A DNA stretch of 64,000 nucleotides from Trichosphaerium sp. ATCC 40318 (lineage: Eukaryota > Protista > Tubulinea). The stretch spans positions 186,001 to 250,000 of the forward strand of contig JALMLS010000516.1 of assembly GCA_038496445.1 (NCBI GenBank), read 5' to 3'. This document shows, piece by piece, positions 806 through 56,996 of the stretch (its first letter is position 1; every line of letters begins with the position of its first letter). The notes beneath the pieces were generated by a model, which was not told the DNA's origin, made no database searches, and was given only the letters and a program-made list of their open reading frames with translations. A program made the position numbers and the translations under genes.

Positions 806-2828
806 CTAACCTGGCATTGGGAATGTGCTTGCGAAAGCCTCAACTTCTTTTTTCAATGTCTAAGTAGAGGATGAATAAAACAACAGAGTAATTTTTTTCT
901 CAATTTTTTTTGATTTACCTTGATAGCATCGCTTTCTTCACAACCTGCAATGAAATCGACCAATTTCTTACCTTTAGCTTTCTACAATATATGTTAATAT
1001 CCAAGCTATTTCCACACTGAAAATAATTACAAAGAGGTAACGTACTTGGATGTCAAGAGCAATTTTCAAAGCGCGATCAAGGAATCCTGCGACTTTGGTG
1101 AAATCTGCTTCTTTGAAGCCACGTGAAGTCAAAGCTGGAGTACCCAAACGAATACCCTTTGGTGATACAGCATTGGCGTCACCGTATATTGTGTTCTTGT
1201 TGGCAGTAATGTGGGCAAAGTCGAACAACTTTTCGAGTTTGGAACCAGTGATTTTATGTGGACGCAAATCCCACAAGATCAAGTGGTTGTCAGTACCTCC
1301 AGTGACAATAGCATGACCGTTATCTACTAAACCCTTTGCAAGAGACTTTGCGTTTGCTTTAACTTGCTTAGCATAATCCTTGAACTCTTGAGTGTTGACT
1401 TGTTTGAGAGCAGTGGCAATTCCAGCAATTGCATGTTCGCTAAAAAAAAATTAACTTCAAAGGCACTGTTCGAGGATCCAAAGCAAGCAAATGTGATGGA
1501 TTCACGTATGTTGATGCAATGGGTTATGAAGGAATTTTTTTACGTACTGTGGACCTCCTTGGAGACCTGGGAAAACAGCTTTGTTGATCTTTGTTTCAAA
1601 ATCATAGTTATCTTTTGATTTACCACCGATTGGTCCTTTTCTGTAAAAGATAAGGGCAGCACGTGGTCCTCTAAGAGTTTTATGTGTTGTAGTTGTAACA
1701 ATATGACAGTGTGCGAAAGGATCATCGGCTTCCTAAAACAAAACAAGTAAGATCTTTGGTGCTTTTTTTTTAATGCTAGCTCAGACAACAAACGTACCTG
1801 AGCTGCAACAAGACCACCAATATGAGCGATATCAGCCATCAAGTAAGCGCCAGCTTTGTTTGCGATTTTTCTCATAGTAGCGTAATCCCATTCTCTTGGG
1901 TAAGCAGAACCACCCTTGTTTGTAGAGTTAGGAAAAAAAAGAAAAATGAGTAAGAAAAACGCGGTAGGCGTACTGCAATAAGCATTTTAGGCTTGAAAGC
2001 GCTTGCAAGAGTTGCCATTTTTTCGTAGTCAATGACACCAGTGGTCTAGAGCTTGTTAGATAAATGTTAACAGTTAAAAAAGAAAAATGGAGTTTAGGCA
2101 AATTATTTAATTCTGGATCACGTACTGGGTCAACTTTGTATCCCATAGACTCCCAGAAGATGGAAGTAGCAGAAACTCTCCTTTTAGCGGTCATGTAACC
2201 GTGACTCAAGCTTCAAAGTGTCAGAATTTGTAGCGAACCTCAAATGTTTAAATGTTTTTACGACGTACTGTCCTCCCGAAGGCAAATCAAGGCCCATGAT
2301 GCGTGAATGAGGTTCTAGGAGGGCTGTGTATACGGAGAAGTTAGCAGGACTTCCTAAAAAAATAGTGTAAGTAGGGAATACGTTAAAAATGTTAATTTAC
2401 CGCTGTATGCTTGTACATTTACTCCCCACTCGCTAGGATCAAGTCTGAAAGCTTCCAAACAACGTTTTATGGCCAAATTCTCAATCTTATCAACAACCTC
2501 GTTACCACCGTAATAACGCGCTCCAGGGTAACCCTCAGAGTATTTGTTTGTTAAGCAAGAACCATTGGCATCCATGACTGCGCGGGAAGTGAAGTTCTAG
2601 GTTTTTACGCGTTAGATAGCTGTAAGAGAGTGTTTGAGCGTTTAGCTATTTACCTCTGACGCGATGAGTTCGAGACATCCAATTTGTCTCTTTTTCTCGG
2701 CTTCAATAAGAGCATGAAGCTCAGGGTCTGATTTTTGTAAAGATGCGTTCTGTTAGTTTTGTAAGTTTACAAGCATAAAATACAAGAACAAGTCACGAAA
2801 ATGCTTAGTCGGTGCGTACCAAGTCCAT
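806..2828 (-). CDS. SHMT: Serine hydroxymethyltransferase, cytosolic type, about 10 introns
   Basis: Spliced exons give LELIASE|[66 protein letters not shown] and end FPMPG*. Confidence 0.97.
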
Positions 2829-3708: not shown

Positions 3709-4344
3709 CTAAGGTATAGTACATTTTAGTACTGCAACACCTTTACTGTAAATGTTACGTTGCCTTAAATTACCCTTTTCATCCCATCTCTTGTGCTCTC
3801 CCTCCATTTGGCCGTTGGCGTAATTATGTAGCGTTCTCAACTGGCCATTAGGATGCCATGAAAGGCAAACTCCTTCTCGTTTATCATCAACATACTTAGC
3901 GCGGATATAGAGTTGACCACTTGTGTACCAATGCTTGTATTCTCCTGTCATTTTGTCGTTATCATAGTGTCCCTTCATTTGCATCATACCATTGTCATGC
4001 CACGCCTTGTACTTGCCTTCTTTTTTACCATTGACATACTGACATTGCATACACAAAAGATTATTCGGATACCATATCTTAGTTTCTCCATGAAGTAAAC
4101 CATGCTGCCAATACGATTTATGTAAAATTTGAGCTGGCGACTTACTTTTTTTTTGTTTCAACCATCTACCATGTTTTTTCAATTCGCTGTCGAATCTAGT
4201 GGCTATGGCTGCTTGTTTGGATAGAAGTGGCCACTGTAAATACGCTTCAACGTCTATGTCAAAGATATATAGGTGTAGCTCCACTGGGAGGTCCAGTAGA
4301 TTGTAACGATCTGATTTACACGTATTTTTCTTCGTCTCACCCAT
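3709..4344 (-). CDS. Intronless F-box-like + MORN-variant (YwqK-like) repeat protein, 5 repeats
   Basis: LLDLPVELHLYIFDID..WPLLSK..TRFD..KHGRW followed by 24-aa EGxxKxWxxNGQLxxxxxYxNGxx units. First plausible ATG is at 4344. Confidence 0.85.
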   Translation of the reverse strand: MGETKKNTCKSDRYNLLDLPVELHLYIFDIDVEAYLQWPLLSKQAAIATRFDSELKKHGRWLKQKKSKSPAQILHKSYWQHGLLHGETKIWYPNNLLCMQCQYVNGKKEGKYKAWHDNGMMQMKGHYDNDKMTGEYKHWYTSGQLYIRAKYVDDKREGVCLSWHPNGQLRTLHNYANGQMEGEHKRWDEKGNLRQRNIYSKGVAVLKCTIP

Positions 4345-4751
4345 ACATTCCGGAATAACGCGAAATACGTTGATTAAGCAAATCAAAGCCCTACGTTTGT
4401 TCAGCGAAAGGTATCTTCCGAAAGCTTTTTTTTTATCAGTCACGTGCAGTATTTTTTTTTCTGTATTAATCTCCAGAAAACCACGTAGTTTCGCGGAGCG
4501 TTTCACTCCTTGTGCTTACTCTGTGAGTCGTAAACAAGACACGAAAGGTCACTTGAATTAACAAACACTGTAATAGGACCATCTAACTCGTCTAATATTC
4601 AGTATGGCTCGGAGACTCAACGTGGTTAAGGAGGTTTTACGTGAGTGTCGTGTTTTTCAATTTTCACAGAAATCGGGGATTCATCGGATTAACTTTAAGG
4701 TTTTTCTGTCTGTGAACTTAAACCATAACAAAATAACTTCACAAAGACCAA

Positions 4752-36713: not shown

Positions 36714-37670
36714 TCAGTTTATGAGCTTGCCATTTTCGTACTTTTTATGTATTTGTAAAACGCCAGATGTACTATAACTCTTATAGTCTCCATTGTGTTT
36801 ACCTTTGATATAACAGCAATGAATGGCTAATTGTCCATTCATATGCCATATCTTGCACTCACCTTCCATACAATCATTTATAAAATGACATACTGATTTC
36901 AACCTGCCGTTAGTATACCACCGTTTTTCTTCTCCGTTCTTCTTGCCCTTGATGTAATGACATTGTGATCGTAAAACTCCTCTAGAATACCACAATTTTT
37001 CTTCACCCTCTTTTTCACCGTTAACAAACTCACATTGTGCTTTCAGTTGTCCATTGTTAAACCACTGTTTGCCAAAACCTTCTTTTTTACCATTAATGAA
37101 ATTACATTGCACGGCTACCTGCCCATTTTCATACCATCTTTGGCTTGTTCCTTCAAGTTTGTTGTTGACGAAACAACAATGTGACCGTTTATGGCCATTT
37201 TGATGCCACAGTGTTAGATAGCCTTCATGTTTACCATTGACAAAATTGTATAGTGCCTTTAGCTGGCCATTAGGATACCACCTCTTCTCTACTCCTTCTT
37301 TTTCACCATTGATGTAAGAACATTGTTTGACAAGCTGTCCACTCTTGTTCCAAAACTTTTCCTCTCCTTCCAGTGTACCTTTAATATAATGGCGCACTGC
37401 CCCGATTTGACCATTTATATGCCATTTCTTGTATTCTCCATGATATAAACCGTGAACGAAATACGCTTGCTTGGCAATTTGCTTATGTTTTGGGTTTTCA
37501 AGTTTATTCCTTTGTCTTATCCATTTTCCATGCTTGTTTAGTTTATTATCAAACCTTGTTGTTGTCGCTGCGTATTTTGATAAGATAGACCACTTTTTAT
37601 TGATTTCAAGGTCCATGTCGATGATATAAAGGTGTAATTCCAGCGGAAGGCATTGTAGAATGTTGGACAT
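36714..37670 (-). CDS. Intronless F-box-like + MORN-variant repeat protein, 10 repeats (copy A, 318 aa)
   Basis: MSNILQCLPLELHLYIIDMD..WSILSK..TRFD..KHGKW plus ten 24-aa units. Confidence 0.9.
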   Translation of the reverse strand: MSNILQCLPLELHLYIIDMDLEINKKWSILSKYAATTTRFDNKLNKHGKWIRQRNKLENPKHKQIAKQAYFVHGLYHGEYKKWHINGQIGAVRHYIKGTLEGEEKFWNKSGQLVKQCSYINGEKEGVEKRWYPNGQLKALYNFVNGKHEGYLTLWHQNGHKRSHCCFVNNKLEGTSQRWYENGQVAVQCNFINGKKEGFGKQWFNNGQLKAQCEFVNGEKEGEEKLWYSRGVLRSQCHYIKGKKNGEEKRWYTNGRLKSVCHFINDCMEGECKIWHMNGQLAIHCCYIKGKHNGDYKSYSTSGVLQIHKKYENGKLIN

Positions 37671-38395
37671 CCTATTTCTGCAGGTACTTGGCTGTTTGGC
37701 ACTCGTAAAGACACTGCAGAATCGAAAAGAACAACCAATCAACAGTCTGATGAAGTACTCTCACGTTGTAAAAGAGAGCGTTTTATAGAATAAAGTAGAC
37801 GAGGTTCAGTCAAGCTTGCTCTTCAATGAAAGTATTCAAGACTCTCCTTACTGCCTTCAATGTGAGCTAGATTGGTAAGTCATTGAAGTTGTCTAACAAG
37901 CTTGTTTCACTAGCATTCAACAACAGCTTTTTTTTTGTTGACGGATCTTGACACCACGTGTTTTTAACCATCACTTTATTTGGTACATTAGTGTAGTTCT
38001 GTTAATGTCTCTGAGGTCCAAAAGTTGTCTCCTATACTCTAAAACAGATAATTACGCTATGTTAATACCGTACACTCAGCGCAAGATACTTTGGAAGCGT
38101 TTGTAATTTTCTTTGAGGTTTTAACGTTTTCTCGCTGTTAACACAACTCTTTACGCCTGAATGTGCCAGCATTCGCGCCTGGTGCTAGTAAGTTAACATG
38201 TAAAAAAGCATTATTAATTTGTACCCGTTTTTATAGCTCCTTGGGGTGAGCAGTTATGAGCGCACCTAAGAAAAATACTGCGATCATCTTGTTAGATGAT
38301 GTGAACAGTGCTTTTTCATCTTGCCTTAATGTGCATAAGGACGACAAGCATGGTACATTGTCATGAGTTATAGAATGAGATGTATTCACATTGCA

Positions 38396-38645: not shown

Positions 38646-39602
38646 TCAGTTTATGAGCTTGCCATTTTCGTACTTTTTATGTATTTGTAAAACGCCAGAT
38701 GTACTATAACTCTTATAGTCTCCATTGTGTTTACCTTTGATATAACAGCAATGAATGGCTAATTGTCCATTCATATGCCATATCTTGCACTCACCTTCCA
38801 TACAATCATCTATAAAATGACGTTCTGATTTCAATCTGCCGTTCATATACCACCGTTTTTCTTCTCCGTTCTTCTTGCCCTTGATGTAATGACACTGTGA
38901 TTGTAAACCTCCTCTAGAATACCACAATTTTTCTTCACCCTCTTTTTCACCGTTAACAAACTCACATTGTGCTTTCAGTTGTCCATTCTTAAACCACTGT
39001 TTGCCAACACCTTCTTTTTTACCATTAATAGAAGTACATTGCACGGCTAACTGCCCATTTTCATACCATCTTTGGCTTGTTCCTTCAAGTTTGTTGTTGA
39101 CGAAACAACAATGTGACCGTTTATGGCCATTTTGATGCCACAGTGTTAGATAGCCTTCATGTTTACCATTGACAAAATTATATAGTCCTCTTAACTGGCC
39201 ATTAGCATGCCACCTCTTACCAACTCCTTCTTTTTCACCATTGATGTAAGAACATTGTTTGACAAGCTGTCCACTCTTGTTCCAAAACTTTTCCTCTCCT
39301 TCCAGTGTACCTTTAATATAATGGCGTACTGCCTCGACTTGTCCATTTTTATGCCATTTCTTGTATTCTCCATGATATAAACCGTGAACGAAATACGCTT
39401 GATTGGCAATTTGCTTCTGTTTTGGGTTTTCAAGTTTATTCCTTTGTTTTATCCATTTTCCATGCTTATTTAGTTTATTATCAAACCTTGTTGTTGTCGC
39501 TGCGTATTTTGATAATATAGACCACTTTTTATTTATGTCAAGGTCCATGTCGATGATATAAAGGTGTAATTCCAGTGGAAGGCATTGTAGAATGTTGGAC
39601 AT
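38646..39602 (-). CDS. Intronless F-box-like + MORN-variant repeat protein, 10 repeats (copy B, 318 aa)
   Basis: Paralogue of 36714-37670 with about 23 aa differences. Confidence 0.9.
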   Translation of the reverse strand: MSNILQCLPLELHLYIIDMDLDINKKWSILSKYAATTTRFDNKLNKHGKWIKQRNKLENPKQKQIANQAYFVHGLYHGEYKKWHKNGQVEAVRHYIKGTLEGEEKFWNKSGQLVKQCSYINGEKEGVGKRWHANGQLRGLYNFVNGKHEGYLTLWHQNGHKRSHCCFVNNKLEGTSQRWYENGQLAVQCTSINGKKEGVGKQWFKNGQLKAQCEFVNGEKEGEEKLWYSRGGLQSQCHYIKGKKNGEEKRWYMNGRLKSERHFIDDCMEGECKIWHMNGQLAIHCCYIKGKHNGDYKSYSTSGVLQIHKKYENGKLIN

Positions 39603-40642
39603 CCTATTTCTGCAGGTACTTGGCTGTTCTCGTAAAGACACTGCAGAACAAAAGAACAAGCAGTCAACTAATGGCAATTGTCTGAAGAAGTACTTTCCGC
39701 GTTGTAAAAGAAAGAGTGTTTATAGAATAAAATCGGCGTGGTTCAGTCAAGCTTGCTGTTCAATGAAAGCATTCAAGACTCTCCTTAATGCCTTCAATGT
39801 GTAGCTAGATTGGTAAGTCATTGAAATTGTCTAACAACTAGGCTGTTTCACTAGCATTCACCTAACAACAGCTTTTTTTTTGTCATGCCTCGGTCTGTAA
39901 AAAGCACATCGCAATCAAAACTTACTATGCAATTATGCGTGAAGGACACGTATAGCCAGTTGAACGCTTTAAAGACCTAACACCGTTCCTTCACGTATTC
40001 CCGTATTGAAAGACAGGAAACAGTTGGCGGTTTGTTGTGTACGATCAAAGATTCTGTAAGTTGTTCGTTTGATAAGTGAATTAAAGAAGTATTCACTCAT
40101 TAAATATAATATAGCAACCAAGGTGCATATAAATGTCATGTAATACACCGGGATAAATAGGAGCTGGTCCGAGCCAAAAGGTCTTTAAAGTTCAAGCAAA
40201 CGTTGTCAGAAAATACCACCCTAAAGAAAGACATAAACTTTGCTCCCCGCGGACTGTGAAAGAAGGTGGACAGCTCCCCGACGATATACTACATTATTGC
40301 GTGTATCACAAAGTAGACACGCGCTATCACCATAATTAAGGCTAAAATATAGGCGGCCACACGTTCCCTAGACTACTGAAAGACGTCATCTTTTTAAGTT
40401 TAGTATTTCAAATAAATGCCTTTTCTAGCACGTGATTTGCCTCCAGCTCTTAGAAGGCATCTAAATTTTACCTAATGTGCGTTATTACTTTTGATTAAAA
40501 CGCAGTAAATTAGTAAAAACAAGCTCACAAATGTGGGAATACCACAATCTTTTTTTTGAGACACATTTTTACAGAGAACCAAAACAAACGGCCACAGTTT
40601 ACCATTAATAAACCATCATAATAACCCACTCTGTAACACAAC

Positions 40643-43398: not shown

Positions 43399-44495
43399 TT
43401 ATATCTTTCCTTTTTGTAAAGAAGATACGACCTGCTTGGCATATGATGATAAGTACTTATACAAAGATACCCAATCGTGTGTCACTGAAAAAATTTCGGA
43501 TCTAGAGCAACAAATAAGAATAAAAGAAACAAAATACTAACATCATCAGGTCAAAAAATTGTTTGTTACGTACACAGCAAACGGAAAATAACTTGGGATT
43601 ACGCCATGAGAATACTCTAAAACATGTGTTAAACCATTATAGTTGCTGCTTAACAATACCAAGCATCCAACTTCCTCCTTTCAAGTGCATGCCTGTAGCC
43701 TCCCAAGCAAAATGTTCAATACGAGCACCAGGTTTGTGTTTTACATAATCAAGTGCTCCTTCACTCCACTATCAAAAAAAAAGATAAGTTCCTGGGCCCA
43801 CGTGATCAATCACGTGCGAATTTTTTCTAGAAAAGGTAAGGAAAAAAAACACGAACCTGGTGGAACTCTCCTTTGATCAAGAAATCATAAATGTCACCCC
43901 TTTGTTACACCAATGTTAATTAAACTCTTAATTAAAAAAAAGTGGTGAACTGTTAGTTTACCAGTATCTTCCAGAGTGTCCTGTAGTAGGTAATGGAGTA
44001 CCAAAAATGAGTATGTACTCAGTAAGGGACGCGTGGAGTAGTTTGAATGATCCCTACAGTAAGAGTTAGCGTACAGTTCCATGAAGAGAGGAAAAGGCGT
44101 TCAAATAGGGCGGATTTTGTGATTTCGCTGTTTTAGTCTCGTTTTACGCTAGAGATCGCATCGATGCTTTAATTAAGCGTAGTAAACAGTATTGTACCAT
44201 CCAAGATCCACAGTTGATGAAAACGAAGTCAAATTCGTCTGTAACCAAGTCAGGGTACTTTAAACGAAGAGTGTTAGTGATATTAGCGATTGCTTTCTCC
44301 AATGGAAGGTCTAGTGAAGAATTAGTTTCAATTAATTCTAAAAGCGTTGTAATACGCGCCTTTCGCGTCATTGGCGATCTTGTGAAGCTCTCCGGCATCA
44401 AAAAGAGGTGGTTGTGCGGATAGGTACAAAAACGCGGGAAGTAGTAGCGCAGTACATAAAATTGATGATACAAAACAGTAGTTGATGCCACACAT
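43399..44495 (-). CDS. ERG2: C-8 sterol isomerase / sigma-1 receptor family
   Basis: N-terminal [22 protein letters not shown]|[25 protein letters not shown]|W, WML|EYSHGVIP; ends LQKGKI*. Confidence 0.93.
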
Positions 44496-45933: not shown

Positions 45934-48900
45934 ATGAAACACGTGGATACTGACCCAATGTTGGTCGATGTTGCATCCGCAACCGATATTGACACTCCTA
46001 TTGTACCTACAAAACGACAAAAAACTGTTGGAGAAGTACCTCAGACTGTTCATTTACCATACGAGATATTGTTGATGATTTTTCTACAAATACGACGCAC
46101 GGACTTGAAACGAGCAGCTTGTGTTGATGTACGTTCAAACAAATATTACGACTTATGTCAGATTCTCATTGGTACCTCCAAAGCGATTTTGGTGTGATGT
46201 TAGTCGTGACTCTAATCTCTGCTGGATTCCCTTATTCGAAAATGACTGTGGAAACATAAGAGGAACATGGCATTTAAGTTCGGCAAGCCACAAACATGAC
46301 TGGGGGGCAACAAAAATGCTGTTTGAGAGTATTCCCATCGACAAACTGAAAGTAGAACACTTTAACTTATGCATTAAGAAGTCGGCAAGCTATGAAAAGC
46401 ATAGATGCATTGTACGTACTATTTGCATATATCAATGGAACACCAATTTGTATTGTTGTGTAGGTGTCTACAGGGCAAGACAAATTTGAACTGGAAGCAT
46501 CAGGACTATTACTTCGCGATAATATTTACTCGGCTTTTGATGAGTTTACTTGGAAAACTATGCAGTCAGATCCTGGGCTTTGGCGCGTTGATATTACAGA
46601 CAAAGGCAAAAGCACAGGCGATCTTGGTCGACTTGTGAACCTAAATCTTCTCCTCAACACAACAAGGTAGTGATAAACTTTCAAAGACCTTTGTGTTAAT
46701 GACTTTTTTTTTAAAGGTTGTGTGATGTGGTTCAAAGGAAACAGGATGTTCCTGGTCTTAAGCTTATGATGGTTGTGGCCATGCAGGATATTATTAAATC
46801 CAGACTTTCCAAACCGTTCCTTAATAAATCTTCTTTCCAACAGCCGTTTATATGCATGGTACGTGTCAGCTGTTCGAAGGAAAGTAATTTTGACAATAAC
46901 GCAGGACGGTGTCAAGATACAGAAACAACCGAAACACCTTAATTTGAGGTTACACAAGTATCAAGTAAATGCTTACAGTTGGATGTTGGCTGTTGAGAGA
47001 GATAAGAACTTTCGTGGTACCTGGTTTTTTGTTGTTTTACTTTGCGTATTTAGTTAAATTATTTAATAGAGTTCAAGTTCAATACACTGCTACCTTGGCC
47101 CCGGTCTAAGACTTCGATCATGTTTGATGTTGAAAAAAAAGAAATACTTACAGCTGAGCAAATTGAAGAAAGAGGGAAAGTCAAGACTGTTACGTTTTCT
47201 GGTGGTGTATTGGCTGGTACTCTCAAGTGTTATTTTGACATTATATCATTGTATTATTGATTTAACGTTAATTAGATGACACGGGACTTGGTAAAACCGT
47301 TGAAGGTAAATATATTTCTCACTTTTTTTAAGCGCTCTCTGCCTCACTCACGTTTCTATCAGTCCTAGCATTGATTCTTGGTCATCCAAAAGAAAATCAC
47401 AAACCTTGTGTAATTAAAGACGAGAATGGTGTTTCTTTCTATTCTTCTAAAGCAACTCTTGGTAAGCTCTACATCCATACAATAACATACTAAAAGATGT
47501 TAGTATGTTGTCCAAGTCACCTTACAAAGCACTGGTGCTACGAGATTAAAAAACATTCCAAGAAAAAACTTGATGTAAAGAAGATAACTACAATTGCTCA
47601 ACTTCGTAAATGTAATGCTCTGGCGTTATCAAATGCTGGTACATTTAATAACACTGATCGCAGTTATTTTCATTCTGAATCTACTTTGACTGTAATCCTT
47701 AGATGTTGTAGTTGTATCGTATCAGTTTTTCAAGAATGACAACTATAAACGAATGCTATGGCCCGAGGTTCCTTGTGAAGGCAACTACCTCAGAGAACGT
47801 ATTGCGAAGGTTGAAAAAATGCGCAAGGCAAGCAAAAATGTATTAACGATATTTGTATCACGTATTAACTGAATCACAGTCTGAAATCACAACGGATAAT
47901 TTGGAATCAAACTCAAAGAAAACACCTATTCTCGACTACTTTATGTGGCACCGTTTAGTACTTGATGAGGTACATGTTAATTATAGTATCAATGAAGTAA
48001 CTGGAAAAAAGGGGCATGAATATATTGACAAATGGTACTTGAGAGGTACTAATGTAAATTGGGAATCGCTAATAAGAGGCAATGTCAAAACCTTACAAAT
48101 TATCTAGTGTTCTATACAAGTCTCTATTCAACGTTTAAGTGGTATGTTACTGGTATGTATTGTATAAATGTTATAGTTATGTTGTCAGTCTTAGTTTCTT
48201 TAGGCACTCTACTCCCAGACTTGTACGTATTAGTGGAAATGTGGAGAATGTAGTACAACTAATCTTTTGATAGTGTTAAATATTTAGGCAACTTCCTAAT
48301 GAAAAAGACAACATTTACTTTTAGTGAAGATACGCGTTATAATCTATCAAGTAGTATTACAATCAAGAAATCTGACTTACTTGCCCAAAGTGCTGAAATT
48401 GAAGCGCATCGTCTTGAGTATGTTGTGTATTGTTGATTGGCTACAGGTCTAAAATTATTCGATGTAAAGGAGAGGTTTTTACCCTGAATTACAAGTATAG
48501 TTTACTGGTAAAATGGAGTAAAAATCTTGGGTAAAACAACATTTTTTCAGGATTTTTACCCAATGCATTTACCCTTAAACTCAGTAAATACCAAGAGTAA
48601 ATATTGAATAAATACAGTAAATACTCACAATATTTACCAGCAAATATTCTCAGTATTTACCAGCAAATATTCTCAGTAAACGTTCAATAAATAAATCATC
48701 ACAAGTTCAGAAAATAACACAAAACACACTTTATTAAGATACAAACTACACAAATTACACAAAACACACTTCGCTAGTCCACAAAATCCTCATATGTGAA
48801 CCAAATCCATTGTAAACGTGGTTGTAGGTGAAATCGGGTCTTGCGGTCGCAATGAGCTTGGTTTCGTCAGTTTTTGTAAATTACTAAGCTTGTAGCGTAC

Positions 48901-51900
48901 GTTTTGATGAAAAACGCCTATATTGCTTGACATTTGCATCATTTTGGCGTCCGCACCAGAGACAAATCTAAAATCGATACCCAATACCTATTAAATGCCG
49001 TTTAAGGTGTTGTGGAGCGGTATGAAAATTTTTTTTGCAGAGTACGCTATGTTTTAAAAACTGCTTTGCAATAAAAGTGTATGCATTCATACCCTTGTGT
49101 GGAGAGCGTTCATCGTGTGAAATATGGGTTTGAAGGTGAAACTACCAAAACCCTCCCTATGGAGGCTTTTTAAAAATACAAATTTAGGAAAAGATGTTTT
49201 TTTAGGCGCTATAAAAGCAATAAAGCGCCAAATGCAGTTGTGAGAAAGAAAATCTTTTTTGTGAAGCTAAAAATTTACTAAAAGTGCTTGCGTACCCTTC
49301 TCTCCACCATACTGTCCTAAATAAAATTTTGGTATCCACAAATTGTGTTTTGTTTGAATACGCTCACTTTTGGAGAAAAATAGTCGTTTTTTTGTAGTTT
49401 AAGGTAGTCGTCCTTATGTGGTAATATTGTTGATGGTAAATACTGGGTAATTACTGAGTGAGAGTATTTACCCAAGTTTTACTGAAAGTAAATACTGGGT
49501 AAATACTGAGCAAGAGTATTTGCTGAGTTTTACTGAGAGTAAATACTGGGTAAGTACTGAGCAAGGGTATTTACCCAAGTTTTACTGAGGGTAAATACTG
49601 GTAATTACTGAGTGAGGGTATTTACTTAGTTTTATGTAATTTTACTGAGGGTAAATACTGGGTAAGTACCGAGTGAGGGTATTTACCCAAGTTTTACTGA
49701 GATGTAAAATTGCGAAAACTCAGTTTTTACTGGTAAAAGGCCAATTGAAGGTAAAATCAGCATTTTACTCTTTGTTTACCCCAAATAATTTTAGACCTGT
49801 ATCTAACTGTTTTTTTTCTTTACAGCTTGCTTTTATGTGATTTTATGATTAATAACTTGATTTGGAGAAACACAAAACAAACTGCAGCAGGTCTGAAAAT
49901 TATCATGGTATAATACCATATTTTATGGTATAATCACCTTTTATGGTACAAGCTCAGTATAATCCATAATTATACCATATAATTATACCATAAAATATGG
50001 TATAATACCATGTTTTTTGGACAAATGGTATAACAGCCATTATACCATGTTTATACCATATCTCAATTTATAGAATATAATTATACCATAAAACATGGTA
50101 CTATACCATGGTATTATACTGTATTTTACAGTATATTATACCATGCATTATACCATATAATTATACCATAAAACACAGTATTATACCATGGTATTATACT
50201 GTATTTTACAGTATTGTATACCGTGCATTATACCATATAATTATACCATAAAATGTGGTATTATACCGTGGTATTATACTGTATAAGTATAAGTTAGTCA
50301 AAGCTCACTTGGTCTGCACTTGATTTAATAGCATATGGACCTACACAAACGCCATACCACACAATGCTTTGACAGTAGCCGTTATTGAACATAATTGGCA
50401 TGTAAATGTGTGAAAAACAGTTTTAAGAGAGAAATCTGGTAACGCGCCCCAATTACGGGCGTTTTAGGGATAAATTGGCCAACTTTCTCCGATTAATGGT
50501 ATTTGAGGAAGAAACCACTCCGCGTACCCCATGTTAGAACGCTACAGTGGTATACACACCAAAAACGCGTTTAGCGCTCGAAAAATGCCCATTCGCAAAA
50601 AACCTCCAATTGGAGGTTTTTTTCTCCGGCTCTCATTTTTTTCTCCCCTCCATACGCATTTTTACACTCAATCAACGCCATACAGCCTCATTTACCAAAT
50701 CAAGAGCAAAATTATTTATTTTTTTTTGACATTCTTGATATATGCCCCAATGTGTGTTAAACCACGCGATTAGTGATATAAGGCAAAGTTGTTTCAGAGC
50801 CTACCCATTTTTCGAGTTTTTTGGTTTTTTTTGGATTTTTTTTGATTTTTTTGGTTTTTTTCCTACCAAACGCCCGCATTTGCCGGAACAGATAGCATTT
50901 AGGCTCTGCACCCATGCGTTGACCTTACGAGTGATATTGTAAACTAATTGGCTAAGCCAGGGCATAAAACTAAGTTTTGACCAGTTTATTGCCCACACAA
51001 CACAAGATACGCTAGAAAGTAGTTGTTTTAAAGCTGTTTGCCATAGGTTTTACAGGCTTAATAGGTGATATAAAAAAAACAAAACGTGTTAGCCGCCCAA
51101 CCAGGTACTATTCCGCTAGAACTCGTTTCCGATGAGGTTGGTAGCTATTTTCATTTCTTTGTTTTAGTCTTGGTTTGGCTTCACCGTGCAGGTCATTTGT
51201 TACTCTCAGCGCTGCCATAAAACAACAATTTTTGTACGACTATTTATTTTGTGTACAAGAAACCAAGCCGGCGCTAACTCTTCTTTTAGGTTTCATGCTA
51301 TATCCATTCAATGCACTTACAGCAAGTACGATCTGTTCTTTTAAGGTTATTTGATCACTGCAAAAAAGGACATGGGCAAAACTAAAAGTCACGGATGTAA
51401 ACAAAAAAAAGATGTATTAATAAATGTGTTTTTATTTTTAGAACAGTTTTTACACAGTATAATACACCTGGTTTTGTGGTATAATCTACCAAGTTTTAAG
51501 GTATAATATACCAGGCTTTATGGTATTATACTGTGTTTTATACCATGTTTTATGGTAGAATTATACCATATAATGCATTTTTTCAGGTGAAAAAATATGG
51601 TATAAATTCGCACTTTCTACTGTATATTTATGGTATAATTTGGCTGTTTCATGGTATAAATCCTTTGATTTATGGTATATTATACTGGAATTTGTGGTAT
51701 AAAATTGGAATCAATGGTATAATTATACCACAAATTCATGGTATCTACCATAAAAACAGCTCGAGAATTTTAGACCTGAGCTTCAGAGTTTGGCATACCT
51801 CCTTATACAGAAAAAGTTATTATCATCCCTTTGCATCCTGTTGAAAAAGCTGTATATAATTCTGCTGTAAAACTAAATAATCAGAGTATGTTGCATTTGC

Positions 51901-53423
51901 TACAAAACCAAGCGTTTTTTTGAAGTTGTTTTGCTTTATTCTTCTAAAGAAAAGATGAAAGAGTGTTGCGGAATGGAAATGAAAACAATGCACTGTTTAC
52001 TTGATGGTTGGGTTGCTTCTATATGTGTACGTTTTGATATTGCAACTATTACATAACTCACTTGTATAAGGCTGCAATCAAGTCTCATAAAAAAGACATT
52101 TCTAAAGCAAAACTCAAAATAGAGGGAGCTGTATTAAATGTTGTTGAGTATCCAGTAAAGTCAAGGAAAAAGGCAGAAAAGGCTACACAGAAGATACAGG
52201 TTTACGAGATTCATTCGCAATCAGTGGCTTACTATGACTTCCAGAAAGCCCACAAACAACTGCACATTCTTGTACCATATGAGATATTACTTAAAGATTT
52301 GGTAAATATTAACTTTTGAATCACGTGTTGTCTAAATATAGCTTCTTTTGTAGATGAAAAAAGCTATGTTGTTTGTGGAAACAAAAAAAATAGCAATTGA
52401 ATATGAATGTGATGTCAAGAATATGGACTACAATCAATTACAATCAGCACTAACAAAGCATGGTATTGAGATTAATGATGAAAGAAAGGCGAGAAGAACA
52501 CTTCGTAAAATTATTGATAGAATACTTGTTCTTGTTTTTTTTTGCCTTACTAAATATTGATGTTAGTATGAATATAGGCACAAATACAAAGGTCTCACGT
52601 TCAAAAAGATGAAACTAATGTATGTTATATATTATAGGTGTATTAACAAATGCATCTATAGGTATAGAAGCAAGGTAGCACAGCTGATTCAAATATTGAG
52701 TAAAAAATCAAATGCTGACAAAAAAGTGATTCTGTTCTCTCAACATCAAGAACTACTCAAGCAGGTCCACAAGGCTCTCTTTGAAAACAACATCTATGCT
52801 ACTATTGTTTCTGAGTATGTGTACATGGGTATTTTATACCAGTGAGTACGAACTAACACAGCATAGAGATGTATATAAACGCATGAGAGATATTGAATGG
52901 TTCCAAGACAAGACCAGAGACATCCTTAAATGTACAGTTATTCTTCTCAAGTACGTGTAGCTTGTTAATGTTGGGCAAACAAAAATACTTATCTTTTCAT
53001 GTAGTATGTCAAATGCCACACCAGCAGGAGCAAACTTGATGAATGCCGATATGGTATTTTTGTTGGGTAAGGTTTTACTTCACGCTTTTTAGCACTGAGA
53101 GCAGTTAGATCCAATATTCAATTTAGAAAAAGCTGTAGCCACAAAAGGTGAAATAACGATTTGAATTGAGATTTCTTACACTAACCCTCATAACAGCAAT
53201 TGAAAGAGCTTGTAGACTAGGTCAAAAGAAACAAGTCACTGTTTTCCACTTTAGTATGAAGGATACTATCGAGCATGTTCAGTACAACAAGATTCACAAT
53301 ACACGCATGCAACAGGGTAAGATTGATCCAGGATGGTCTAACCATTAACATTCAACATTAGAAAAGCAAGTGAAGAAGAAGGTGAGCGAAAAAGAAGAAA
53401 AGAAAAATTGTGCACACAAATAG
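45934..53423 (+). CDS. F-box + SNF2/RAD5-like helicase, interrupted by two transposons
   Basis: HLPYEILLMIF (F-box), LHKYQ, GGVLA|DDTGLGKT, LVLDE|GHE, KWYVTG, WRNTK, KVILFSQ, GANL, RACRLGQ. Confidence 0.85.
48444..49799. mobile_element. Non-autonomous TIR DNA transposon (1356 bp) inside a helicase intron, TSD TA
   Basis: Perfect 16-bp TIR CAGGTCTAAAATTATT, TA on both sides, subterminal GTAAA/TTTAC repeats. Removing it restores a normal short GT-AG intron. Confidence 0.9.
49436..49702 (+). repeat. Subterminal tandem array, 5 x about 52 bp
   Basis: Unit GTAAATACTGGGTAAnTACTGAGnnAGnGTATTTACCCAAGTTTTACTGAnn. Confidence 0.9.
49888..51778. mobile_element. Non-autonomous TIR DNA transposon (1891 bp) inside a helicase exon, TSD AG
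   Basis: Ends are CAGGTCT(G)AAAATT ... AATTTTAGACCTG with AG on both sides. Removing it restores KQTAASEFGIPP. Confidence 0.9.
49905..50285. repeat. Subterminal TATACCAT/ATGGTATA array (mirrored at about 51455-51750)
   Basis: Many copies of the motif in both orientations at both ends of the element. Confidence 0.85.
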
Positions 53424-54180: not shown

Positions 54181-55554
54181 CTAAATTCCAGTTTTATTCT
54201 CTCTTGCTCTCACCATGCACTCTCCTTCAAGTTTACCATCAACATAAACACAGTTCCTAAACAATGAACCATCTGTACACCACTCTGAATACTCCCCATG
54301 TAGAGTGCCATTGACGTAAGCACATCTCTTGAGTAAGTGAGTATAATACCACTCTTTAAACTCTCCATGATATTTACCGTTGAGATAATAACACTTCTTT
54401 GTCAGTTTACCATCCTCATGCCACTCTTTGTACTCTCCTTCTTGTTTCCTGACACAATCAAACTTGAGTTTTAATTGCCCATTCCTATGCCACTCCTCAA
54501 AGCTTCCATCGTATTTGTTGTGGATACACATGTAATGATGTGTCAATACACCTTTTTTCGAAGATGACGATGAATACCATAATTTGTACTCTCCATAGAG
54601 TTCACCGTTGACGTAATTGAAATGCTTCTTCAAAATACCATTTTTGTACCATGTCTTGTACTCTCCATTAAGTCTACCTTTGGTGAAATAACATTTCTTC
54701 ATCAGTTGTCCATCGTAGTGCCATTCTTTGTATTCCCCATGTCGTTCATTGTTTACGTAATTACAAATGTTCTTCAATTGACCATCTTTGTACGGAGTGT
54801 TTTCATCTCGATAATTCACATAGGTTGTCGTGTGAATACCTTCAATCTTACCATTCACATAATTACACTCCTCTTTTGACTGGCAGTTCCACATATCAGA
54901 CCATTTAACATACTGGCCATGACGTTTACCATGTTTGTATGTACAGTGTAACTTCAATTTATCACATTTGTACTCTTTGTAGTCTCCGTGAAGTTTACCA
55001 TTTATGTAATTCTGATGCATCACTAACTTTCCATCATTGTCCCACTCTTTATACTCTCCATGAATACCGCCATTGATGTAAGTACACTCCTTCACCAGTT
55101 GGCCATTGCTATGCCATTCTTTGTATTCTCCATGTTGCTCATTGTTCATATAATTAGACAGTATCTTCAATCTACCATTATTGTCATACCATTCTTTGTA
55201 CTCGCCTTGTCGTTCACCGTTGGTATAATTACAGTGCCAAGCTAACTGAGGTATATTCTTATCGTAACTGTTATAGTGCCAGTCTTTGTGTTCTCCATGT
55301 CGTTGACCATGCTTCCAAAAGAATTTTATATAGTCCTTTTGTCCGCTTTGTAAAGGCAGCTCCTTTACCCAACGCCCGTGTTTTTCCATGTCAGAGTCAA
55401 ACCTAGTCATTGTTGCCATGTGTTTTGATAGCAATGGCCATTTTAAATACACTTCAAAGTCCAAGTCGATAATATCTAGTTGTAGCTCTACTGGTAACTG
55501 AAACACGTGACTACACGCTGATATTCCGTTATTCATTCCCTTTTCGCGGTTCAT
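54181..55554 (-). CDS. Intronless F-box-like + MORN-variant repeat protein, about 14 repeats (457 aa)
   Basis: FQLPVELQLDIIDLD..WPLLSK..TRFD..KHGRW plus HGEYKEW units. Confidence 0.9.
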   Translation of the reverse strand: MNREKGMNNGISACSHVFQLPVELQLDIIDLDFEVYLKWPLLSKHMATMTRFDSDMEKHGRWVKELPLQSGQKDYIKFFWKHGQRHGEHKDWHYNSYDKNIPQLAWHCNYTNGERQGEYKEWYDNNGRLKILSNYMNNEQHGEYKEWHSNGQLVKECTYINGGIHGEYKEWDNDGKLVMHQNYINGKLHGDYKEYKCDKLKLHCTYKHGKRHGQYVKWSDMWNCQSKEECNYVNGKIEGIHTTTYVNYRDENTPYKDGQLKNICNYVNNERHGEYKEWHYDGQLMKKCYFTKGRLNGEYKTWYKNGILKKHFNYVNGELYGEYKLWYSSSSSKKGVLTHHYMCIHNKYDGSFEEWHRNGQLKLKFDCVRKQEGEYKEWHEDGKLTKKCYYLNGKYHGEFKEWYYTHLLKRCAYVNGTLHGEYSEWCTDGSLFRNCVYVDGKLEGECMVRARENKTGI

Positions 55555-56303: not shown

Positions 56304-56996
56304 TCACTTTGTCTTTTTTTGCACACCGTTTACATAAAAACAACAATCCACCAAATCACCATCTATCAACCATACCTTATACTGCCCTTCTAATTTTCCA
56401 TTAACATATTTAGTATGCTCATATAATTGTCCATTCTCATGATGCCAAGTCTTGTACTCTCCCTCCAAAACACCTTTTGCATATGAGCAATGAAGCCTTA
56501 ATGTTCCATTCTGGTGCCAGCTTTTGTATTCTCCATCTAAGCATCCTTTGATGTAATGACATTGTTCCTTTAACTGGCCATTCATATGAAATGTCTCATA
56601 CAAACCACTCAACTTGTCATTAACATAGAAGCACGTTTTCTGAATAACACCATTAAAGTACCATTGTGTGCACTTGTTTTCTTTCTTGCCATTGACATAC
56701 TGACAGACATCACTCAAATACCCACTTTTAAACCAATTCTTTTTACAACCATGTTTCACTCCGTGACGGAAATATAACTCCTCTTGTAATACTCCAATCC
56801 CTCTGTTTACATTATCTCTATAAAATCGTCTCCATTTGCCATGCTTGTTAAGATTATCGTCGAACCTAGTCCTGTTTGCTAGCTCTTTGGATAGCAGAGG
56901 TATTTTAATAAATGTTTCAGCGTCTAAGTCCATTATACTAAGCTGAAGCTCCTTCGGAAGCATAAAGAAATAGGTTTTACTCTCTTTTGTATTCAT
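56304..56996 (-). CDS. Intronless F-box-like + MORN-variant repeat protein, 6 repeats (230 aa)
   Basis: FMLPKELQLSIMDLD..IPLLSK..TRFD..KHGKW plus 6 units. Confidence 0.9.
   Translation of the reverse strand: MNTKESKTYFFMLPKELQLSIMDLDAETFIKIPLLSKELANRTRFDDNLNKHGKWRRFYRDNVNRGIGVLQEELYFRHGVKHGCKKNWFKSGYLSDVCQYVNGKKENKCTQWYFNGVIQKTCFYVNDKLSGLYETFHMNGQLKEQCHYIKGCLDGEYKSWHQNGTLRLHCSYAKGVLEGEYKTWHHENGQLYEHTKYVNGKLEGQYKVWLIDGDLVDCCFYVNGVQKKTK

Follow-up and report, generated by a model that had tools for sequence, protein, structure and literature searches.

The window analyzed in this study is a 64,000-nucleotide (64-kb) stretch of DNA from Trichosphaerium sp. ATCC 40318 (GenBank assembly GCA_038496445.1, contig JALMLS010000516.1, positions 186,001 to 250,000 of the forward strand). 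All positions given here are counted from the first letter of the window. The window carries a gene whose predicted product combines an F-box-like N-terminus with an SNF2-family helicase, and two transposable elements that share their terminal inverted repeats (TIRs) were found in this one gene. Element A is the upstream one and lies in an intron, while element B, 88 bp further on, lies between two pieces of a coding exon. The features of this locus are as follows.

45934-53423, + strand: host gene with an F-box-like N-terminus and an SNF2-family helicase; hand-built model of 25 exon pieces and about 1000 codons
48418-49825, + strand: intron 13, host of element A, reading GTATGT..TCTAAC..TTTACAG; 50 nt long without A and one TA
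48444-49799, unstranded: element A, 1356 bp, non-autonomous, with the termini of B, inverted over 16 of 17 nt, and TA/TA flanks at 48442-48443 and 49800-49801
49826-49887, + strand: left piece of the split exon, ..LLLCDFMINNLIWRNTKQTA, whose last two letters are the left AG at 49886-49887; read in frame from 49827 and joined to exon 13 (48325-48417) in phase 2
49888-51778, unstranded: element B, a 1891-bp non-autonomous TIR transposon with inverted 13-nt ends
51781-51885, + strand: right part of the split exon, [A]SEFGIPPYTEKVIIIPLHPVEKAVYNSAVKLNNQ; the next donor is A|GTATGT at 51886

The gene model was built by hand from three-frame translations and its frames were checked by script, exon by exon. 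All 25 pieces were open, and each was in the phase passed on by the preceding piece. The native introns (n = 23) were all of the GT-AG type and ranged from 27 to 158 nt, with a median of 50 nt. Exon translations contained the helicase motifs DDTGLGKT, LVLDEVH, VILFSQ, and IERACRLGQ. When compared with PDB, the motif VI exon (53199-53315) matched the SNF2 ATPases Fft3 (E 3.7e-5), ERCC6, INO80, CHD1, and ISWI. Pfam matches of single exons were weak: SNF2-rel_dom was found with an E-value of 0.011 and 15.3 bits (cut-off 24.9), and Helicase_C with an E-value of 0.045 and 14.5 bits (cut-off 23.5). The exact exon pieces matched no Pfam family. In PDB, neither piece of the split exon nor the DExH exon had a useful match, a phmmer search with the helicase-C exon against 1.84 billion representatives returned one irrelevant match only, and no relatives of that exon were found in viral contigs.

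An F-box-like match (E 1.8e-4) lies in exon 1 (45934-46128), where it is interrupted by intron 1; an F-box and an SNF2 helicase in one protein are an unusual pairing. Two outliers of the model, which depend on the model itself, are a 27-nt intron (47306-47332) and the GTTCTT donor of the intron at 52528-52566. Intron 11 (48046-48203), at 158 nt, is long for this gene. A piece of this intron, LIRGNVKTLQII, and an alternative frame of exon 12 (48204-48270), RISGNVENVVQLIF, were similar to each other as well as to the SNF2 motif III region, and this likeness could stem from a local duplication of which these are remnants, or point to an alternative exon. The alternative frame of exon 12 (f1, ..RISGNVENVVQLIF) is SNF2-like and was considered for the model; it was rejected for its phase clash with the neighbouring exons, whereas frame f2 (TLLPDLYVLVEMWR) fits.

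Element B consists of a unique, non-coding core placed between two fields of subterminal repeats. Its parts, and the sites around them that matter for splicing, are listed here.

49888-49901, + strand: left TIR, CAGGTCTGAAAATT, with GT at 49891-49892, as placed by the alignment of four ends
49901-50284, unstranded: left subterminal repeat field, with GGTATAA/TTATACC motifs in either orientation; 50068-50284 consists of 2.7 copies of an 80-bp unit
49911-49913, + strand: TAA, the first in-frame stop on read-through, 8 codons into B, after ..TKQTAAGLKIIMV
50285-51456, unstranded: unique, non-coding core, with a 26-nt palindrome at 50597-50622, a T-rich microsatellite at 50808-50861, and AATAAA at 51419
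51457-51745, unstranded: right subterminal repeat field, with GGTATAA-type motifs and 21-22-bp units
51766-51778, - strand: right TIR, AATTTTAGACCTG, which holds an acceptor-like TTTTAG site with AG at 51772-51773
51779-51788, + strand: candidate acceptors 3' of B, namely the duplicated AG at 51779-51780, the AG of CTTCAG at 51785-51786, and the AG of AGAG at 51787-51788

An earlier reading of this DNA, made from the letters alone (hereafter the sequence-only reading), had described the same element, and its coordinates, letters, 1891-bp size, inverted ends, and AG/AG flanks were all correct. The AATAAA to which it had drawn attention is present and is the sole one on the + strand of B. The reverse complement of the right end of B is CAGGTCTAAAATT; by comparison, the left end of B has one extra G, which in the alignment of four ends was absent from the other three ends of A and B. 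The flanks of B form a direct repeat at k = 2 only (k = 1-10 checked), which is AG at 49886-49887 and at 51779-51780. The GGTATAA-type motifs occur in 26 copies within B and were not enriched elsewhere in the window. Element B possesses no open reading frame (ORF) of more than 80 amino acid residues and no Pfam match, and blastn found no second copy of either A or B within the window. The perfect 26-nt palindrome of the core, AAAAAACCTCCAATTGGAGGTTTTTT, was also unique within the window.

The empty site of B was reconstructed as ..AAACTGC-AG-CTTCAGAG... Without B and one AG, the split exon is 167 nt long and reads ..LIWRNTKQTA-A-SEFGIPPYTEKV.., in phase on both sides. The claim of the sequence-only reading that the element sits inside a helicase coding exon is borne out, as this exon fits the phases of an open gene model. 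This stretch is presumably the conserved SNF2-type ..LRR.K....LP.K.E.. block that precedes motif IV. Downstream of B, about 520 codons remain open and include every C-lobe motif of the helicase. The downstream helicase motifs had been described as looking intact, and in the model the rest of the gene is open throughout.

The shared termini are far more frequent around this gene than expected by chance. By pattern search, the 13-mer CAGGTCTAAAATT was found in the window as three exact copies plus one with a 1-nt indel, and the chance expectation of exact 13-mers in 128 kb (both strands) is about 0.002 (5.2 if two mismatches are allowed). Together they make up two inverted pairs, which bound B and A respectively; A had gone unmentioned in the sequence-only reading. 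Similar to the flanks of B, those of A form a direct repeat at k = 2 only (TA/TA; k = 1-10 checked), and the joint chance of a 2-bp duplication at both elements is about 1/256. Similarity between A and B, as assessed by blastn, is confined to their ends. Inside its ends, A has subterminal repeats of its own, which include eight exact copies of GGTAAATAC, a 51-bp unit repeated 5.1 times at 49436-49708, and short repeats in both orientations; GGTAAATAC was not enriched elsewhere in the window. The subterminal motifs of A and B differ by one base, suggesting that they are binding sites for one transposase. The longest ORFs of A do not exceed 80 amino acid residues, and no Pfam family was matched.

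Without A and one TA, intron 13 reads GTATGTTGTGTATTGTTGATTGGCTATCTAACTGTTTTTTTTCTTTACAG. Its length of 50 nt then equals the median of the native introns, CTAAC is 20 nt before its 3' end, and its acceptor is CAG. The phases of exons 13 and 14 fit only the GTATGT donor of intron 13 and not the CAG|GT in the left end of A. Thus, A is a harmless intronic insertion. It does not make an intron of its own, and the family has no need to make one.

Elements A and B are adjacent and their termini were found nowhere else in the 64 kb; the chance that two random insertions fall within 100 bp of each other is about 0.3%. Their closeness suggests an insertion hot spot. In addition, both target sites have the form GC-[NN]-pyrimidine-rich (GGC TA TCT for A and TGC AG CTT for B). 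That A and B form one composite element was considered and rejected, as the intervening 88 bp are the end of a host intron and the start of an exon.

Elements A and B are non-autonomous cut-and-paste TIR DNA transposons. One sequence is found at all four ends, inverted over 16 of 17 nt in A and, save for an indel of 1 nt, over 13 nt in B. Both elements are flanked by a duplication of fixed length, and both empty sites restore a normal host structure. Neither contains a transposase ORF. The combination of CA..TG termini with duplications of 2-5 bp is a hallmark of the CACTA/Mirage/Chapaev/Transib (CMCT) group, and relatives of Harbinger/ISL2EU also make 2-bp duplications (PMC12730594). Similar to the CMCT elements, A and B possess CA..TG termini (CAG..CTG), a 2-bp duplication, bidirectional arrays of subterminal repeats, and no coding capacity. 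Different from them, the ends of A and B read CAGGTC and not CACTA, and the placement of the family is only tentative. An autonomous copy, which would encode a transposase with DDE plus C(2)C/H(3-4)H motifs, was found neither in the window nor in the viral contigs or metagenomes searched.

Two other superfamilies were considered. A CAGGT-type end and the TA flanks of A fit Tc1/mariner, which is excluded because B is flanked by AG/AG and has no TA on either side. Members of hAT make an 8-bp duplication. The flanks of B (AACTGCAG vs. AGCTTCAG) agree at 6 of 8 positions and those of A (ATTGGCTA vs. TATCTAAC) are unrelated, so hAT is excluded for lack of such a duplication. Searches beyond the window returned 57 chance-like singletons for the TIR 16-mer in viral contigs and 41 singletons for the TIR 18-mer in metagenomes, with the inverted partner at no locus. 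A 26-mer from the left flank had no match in metagenome contigs, and the TIR string was found in full-text literature only within unrelated primers. Novelty is limited to the TIR family itself and to the fact that two insertions lie so close together in a single gene.

The ends of B were compared with the splice sites of the host gene by use of matrices built on the 23 hand-annotated introns. The sequence-only reading had proposed the CAG|GT of the left TIR as a donor. The GT is indeed at 49891-49892, but the donor CAG|GTCTGA (49891) scored only 2.8 bits, a background level, compared to a leave-one-out mean of 5.5 bits (sd 2.4) for the native donors. At position +3, where the TIR donor has a C, the native donors have A (20/23), G (2/23), or T (1/23) and never C (0/23). 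Of the unused exonic GTs in the host gene, 46 of 163 (28%) scored at least as high as the TIR donor, as did 44 of the 110 GTs inside B (40%), 23 of which reached the native mean. Stronger donors lie 17-55 nt further in, within the left repeats of B: ATG|GTATAA at 49908 and 49928 (5.7 bits) and ATG|GTACAA at 49946 (7.5 bits).

On the 3' side, the TTTTAG in the right TIR (51773) is the first AG past the last plausible branch region, and its use would lead to ACC TGA or shift the frame. The duplicated AG (51780), which reads GAG, follows TTTTAG by 7 nt and scored 5.0 bits with the acceptor matrix, while the CTTCAG acceptor (51786) scored 1.6 bits. No yTAAC branch motif was found near the 3' end of B, compared to 13 of 23 native introns with one within 45 nt. 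As an intron, B would be about 38 times as long as the median native intron.

The two junctions proposed earlier do translate as stated: splicing from 49891 to 51780 gives T-A-A-A-S-E and from 49891 to 51786 gives T-A-A-E, both of which rejoin the downstream frame without a stop. Among the GT x AG pairs near the ends of B, however, 4 of 36 were in frame and stop-free, so the in-frame option at B is what chance would be expected to provide. The further proposal that any sense insertion at an AG would be frame-neutral for the whole family does not hold, for the duplication at A is TA and A lies in an existing intron. AG is therefore not the target of the family, and frame neutrality is an accident of the site of B. 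Likewise, the suggestion that the ends are splice signals of an introner-like family is not supported, in view of the background-level donor, the competing TTTTAG, and the stronger internal donors. Introners have splice sites at their ends that match those of the host, and those at the ends of B do not.

Taken as RNA, the 80-nt ends of B are predicted to pair with a free energy of -39.4 kcal/mol (z -6.8 vs. shuffles). Being an exonic DNA transposon with inverted ends that are predicted to pair, B has the structure of a substrate for SOS splicing.

With a probability of roughly 0.6, we regard B as a non-autonomous DNA transposon of an unclassified TIR family with a 2-bp duplication, whose recent insertion disrupts a coding exon of the SNF2 helicase gene. 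Element B would have been inserted by cut-and-paste and may still be polymorphic. A transposase encoded elsewhere would recognize the shared ends and probably also the subterminal motifs of the GGTA(T)AATAC type. The pre-mRNA would carry the stop found 8 codons into B, and spliceosomal removal of B via cryptic sites would mostly be out of frame. Together, such a stop and such removal would most likely leave an allele that is null or much weakened. That in-frame GT..AG pairs exist at the ends of B would then be a coincidence of the insertion site and not a design of the family. A gene that is otherwise fully open is compatible with a young insertion, and both empty-site reconstructions are textbook host structures, a 167-nt exon in phase for B and a 50-nt intron for A. 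As an event, the insertion of B is ordinary in kind.

Several points weigh against a disruptive insertion. Loss of function of the B allele is something that we infer from the DNA. The approximately 520 open codons downstream of B agree with a very young insertion as well as with selection that continues, and, together with their C-lobe motifs, would argue for a working gene if the insertion were old. Moreover, the G found only at the left end of B falls exactly on donor position +5, where it raises the score from 1.0 bit (GTCTAA) to 2.8 bits (GTCTGA), and it could be a compensatory change. We put the share of single TIR changes that would better the donor at roughly 5%, and the observation on the +5 G was made post hoc and is a hint only. 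Finally, the splice matrix is based on the 23 hand-annotated introns alone, and since B is known from a single copy, the age of its insertion is not estimable.

Among the alternatives, rescue at the RNA level by either cryptic or structure-triggered removal of B, the two routes taken jointly, is a live minority option. In one form, which we consider rather unlikely, the mRNA loses B either through cryptic splice sites within or close to the ends of the element, as known for maize Ds/dSpm and C. elegans Tc1, or through spliceosome-independent excision that is triggered by pairing of the inverted ends (SOS splicing), with mixed and imprecise products, some of which are in frame. SOS splicing acts on exonic and not intronic DNA transposons, requires pairing inverted repeats alone, and leaves small indels, with a subset of the products in frame (PMC12779559). 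The exonic position of B, the predicted pairing of its 80-nt ends, and the intact downstream ORF all agree with such removal, and one of the stronger donors yields an in-frame pair (49908 to 51788). However, demonstrations of SOS splicing, which involves AKAP17A, CAAP1, and RTCB, are confined to C. elegans and human cells. The perfect terminal pairing of B, at 7 + 6 nt only, is also far below that of the 54-nt repeats of Tc1, and an insertion in a conserved helicase block makes it less likely that scars are tolerated.

It is improbable that B acts as a new spliceosomal intron, with the donor at 49891 and the acceptor at 51780 or 51786, and leaves a working helicase with one additional Ala or one Ser fewer. 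Both junctions are in frame and free of stops, the acceptor at 51780 scored 5.0 bits, the gene downstream of B is intact, and the G specific to the left end of B betters donor position +5. Introners that bring their own 5' site and obtain their 3' AG from the duplication have been documented (PMC11282704). In addition, the native intron at 52528 seems to use GTTCTT, apparently a non-GTA donor, so this gene can make use of weak donors. These points are opposed by a donor that 28% of the unused exonic GTs match or beat and that has a +3 C seen in 0 of 23 native donors, by better donors just within B, by a GAG acceptor at 51780 that is preceded by TTTTAG, and by the absence of a yTAAC branch motif near the 3' end of B. 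Moreover, the intron would be 1.9 kb long in a gene with a median of 50 nt, sister element A is flanked by a TA duplication and occupies an intron that was already there, and no second B, as expected of a multi-copy family, was found in the window. The more specific version, in which B is an intron caught at birth whose CAG|GT was sharpened after insertion by the +5 G and is spliced to either CTTCAG or the duplicated AG, is more doubtful still.

A reading in which B is not exonic is very improbable. Here B would have landed exactly on the 3' splice site of an older, 51-nt intron that ran from the donor TAT|GTGATT at 49837 to the acceptor GCAG at 49887, and the stretch 'CDFMINNLIWRNTKQTA' would be intronic. 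The pair 49837 to 51780 is in frame and stop-free and ATAAC is found about 30 nt before the AG, but this reading requires an 11-nt micro-exon, GTG donors are rare in the host gene (2/23), the stretch is A-rich without a pyrimidine tract, and its protein reading, ..RL.LL..FM...WR..K..(I)PP..E, is presumably the conserved block before motif IV of SNF2/BRG1-type sequences.

Outside the host gene, the window contains five intronless ORFs with MORN_2 (YwqK-like) repeats, at 3709-4506, 36714-37742, 38646-39677, 54181-55554, and 56304-56996, all on the - strand. At least those at 54181-55554 and 56304-56996 start with an F-box-like LP.EL..I motif. Among 5.8 billion proteins searched, the best relatives of the 457-residue MORN ORF were bacterial YwqK-family proteins with identities of 28-44%, none of which was close, and exact matches to three versions of the MORN ORF were not found in the protein collection. 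Exons for a serine hydroxymethyltransferase (Pfam SHMT, E 9e-8) were found at 974-2575 (- strand) and an ERG2/sigma-1-receptor-like ORF (E 6.6e-4) at 44144-44491 (- strand). Rfam and tRNA scans of the window found nothing.

Introners are families of many near-identical introns that occur in unrelated genes and have consistent, used splice sites (PMC12130899). Similar to the introners of Micromonas, Aureococcus, dinoflagellates, fungi, and others, B is a TIR element with a duplication at the exon junction. It also resembles the scheme of Micromonas IE1 (PMC11282704) in having a GT near its 5' end and an AG from the duplication, a likeness of geometry only. Different from introners, however, B occurs as one copy in 64 kb, is 1.9 kb long, and has splice signals at background level, while its sister A creates no intron of its own. 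Maize Ds/dSpm, C. elegans Tc1, and the substrates of SOS splicing are similar to B in being exonic DNA transposons with pairing inverted ends whose end-proximal removal could restore the frame (PMC12779559). Those cases were shown by RNA data, are imprecise, mostly not GU-AG, and have longer repeats. TIRs and a duplication at the intron borders are also found in the MITE-derived non-canonical introns of Fritillaria borealis and in the non-conventional introns of euglenids, in the latter of which CAG is often paired with CTG near the ends (PMC11282704). In contrast, the 23 native introns of the host gene are canonical GT-AG introns with yeast-like branch motifs. Given that all 23 are canonical, there is no sign of an altered spliceosome.

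As to annotation, gene callers may invent a 1.9-kb intron at B. The TIR ends together with the subterminal motifs of A and B provide two seeds for finding the family genome-wide. If B were spliced in frame, it would be a single datable case of a transposon splitting an exon in two and would bear on the origins of introners, with sister element A in the neighbouring intron of the same short-intron gene as an internal control. If intron birth were true, the family with CAGGTCTAAAATT ends and a 2-bp duplication would be an undescribed intron-generating transposon in a short-intron eukaryote.

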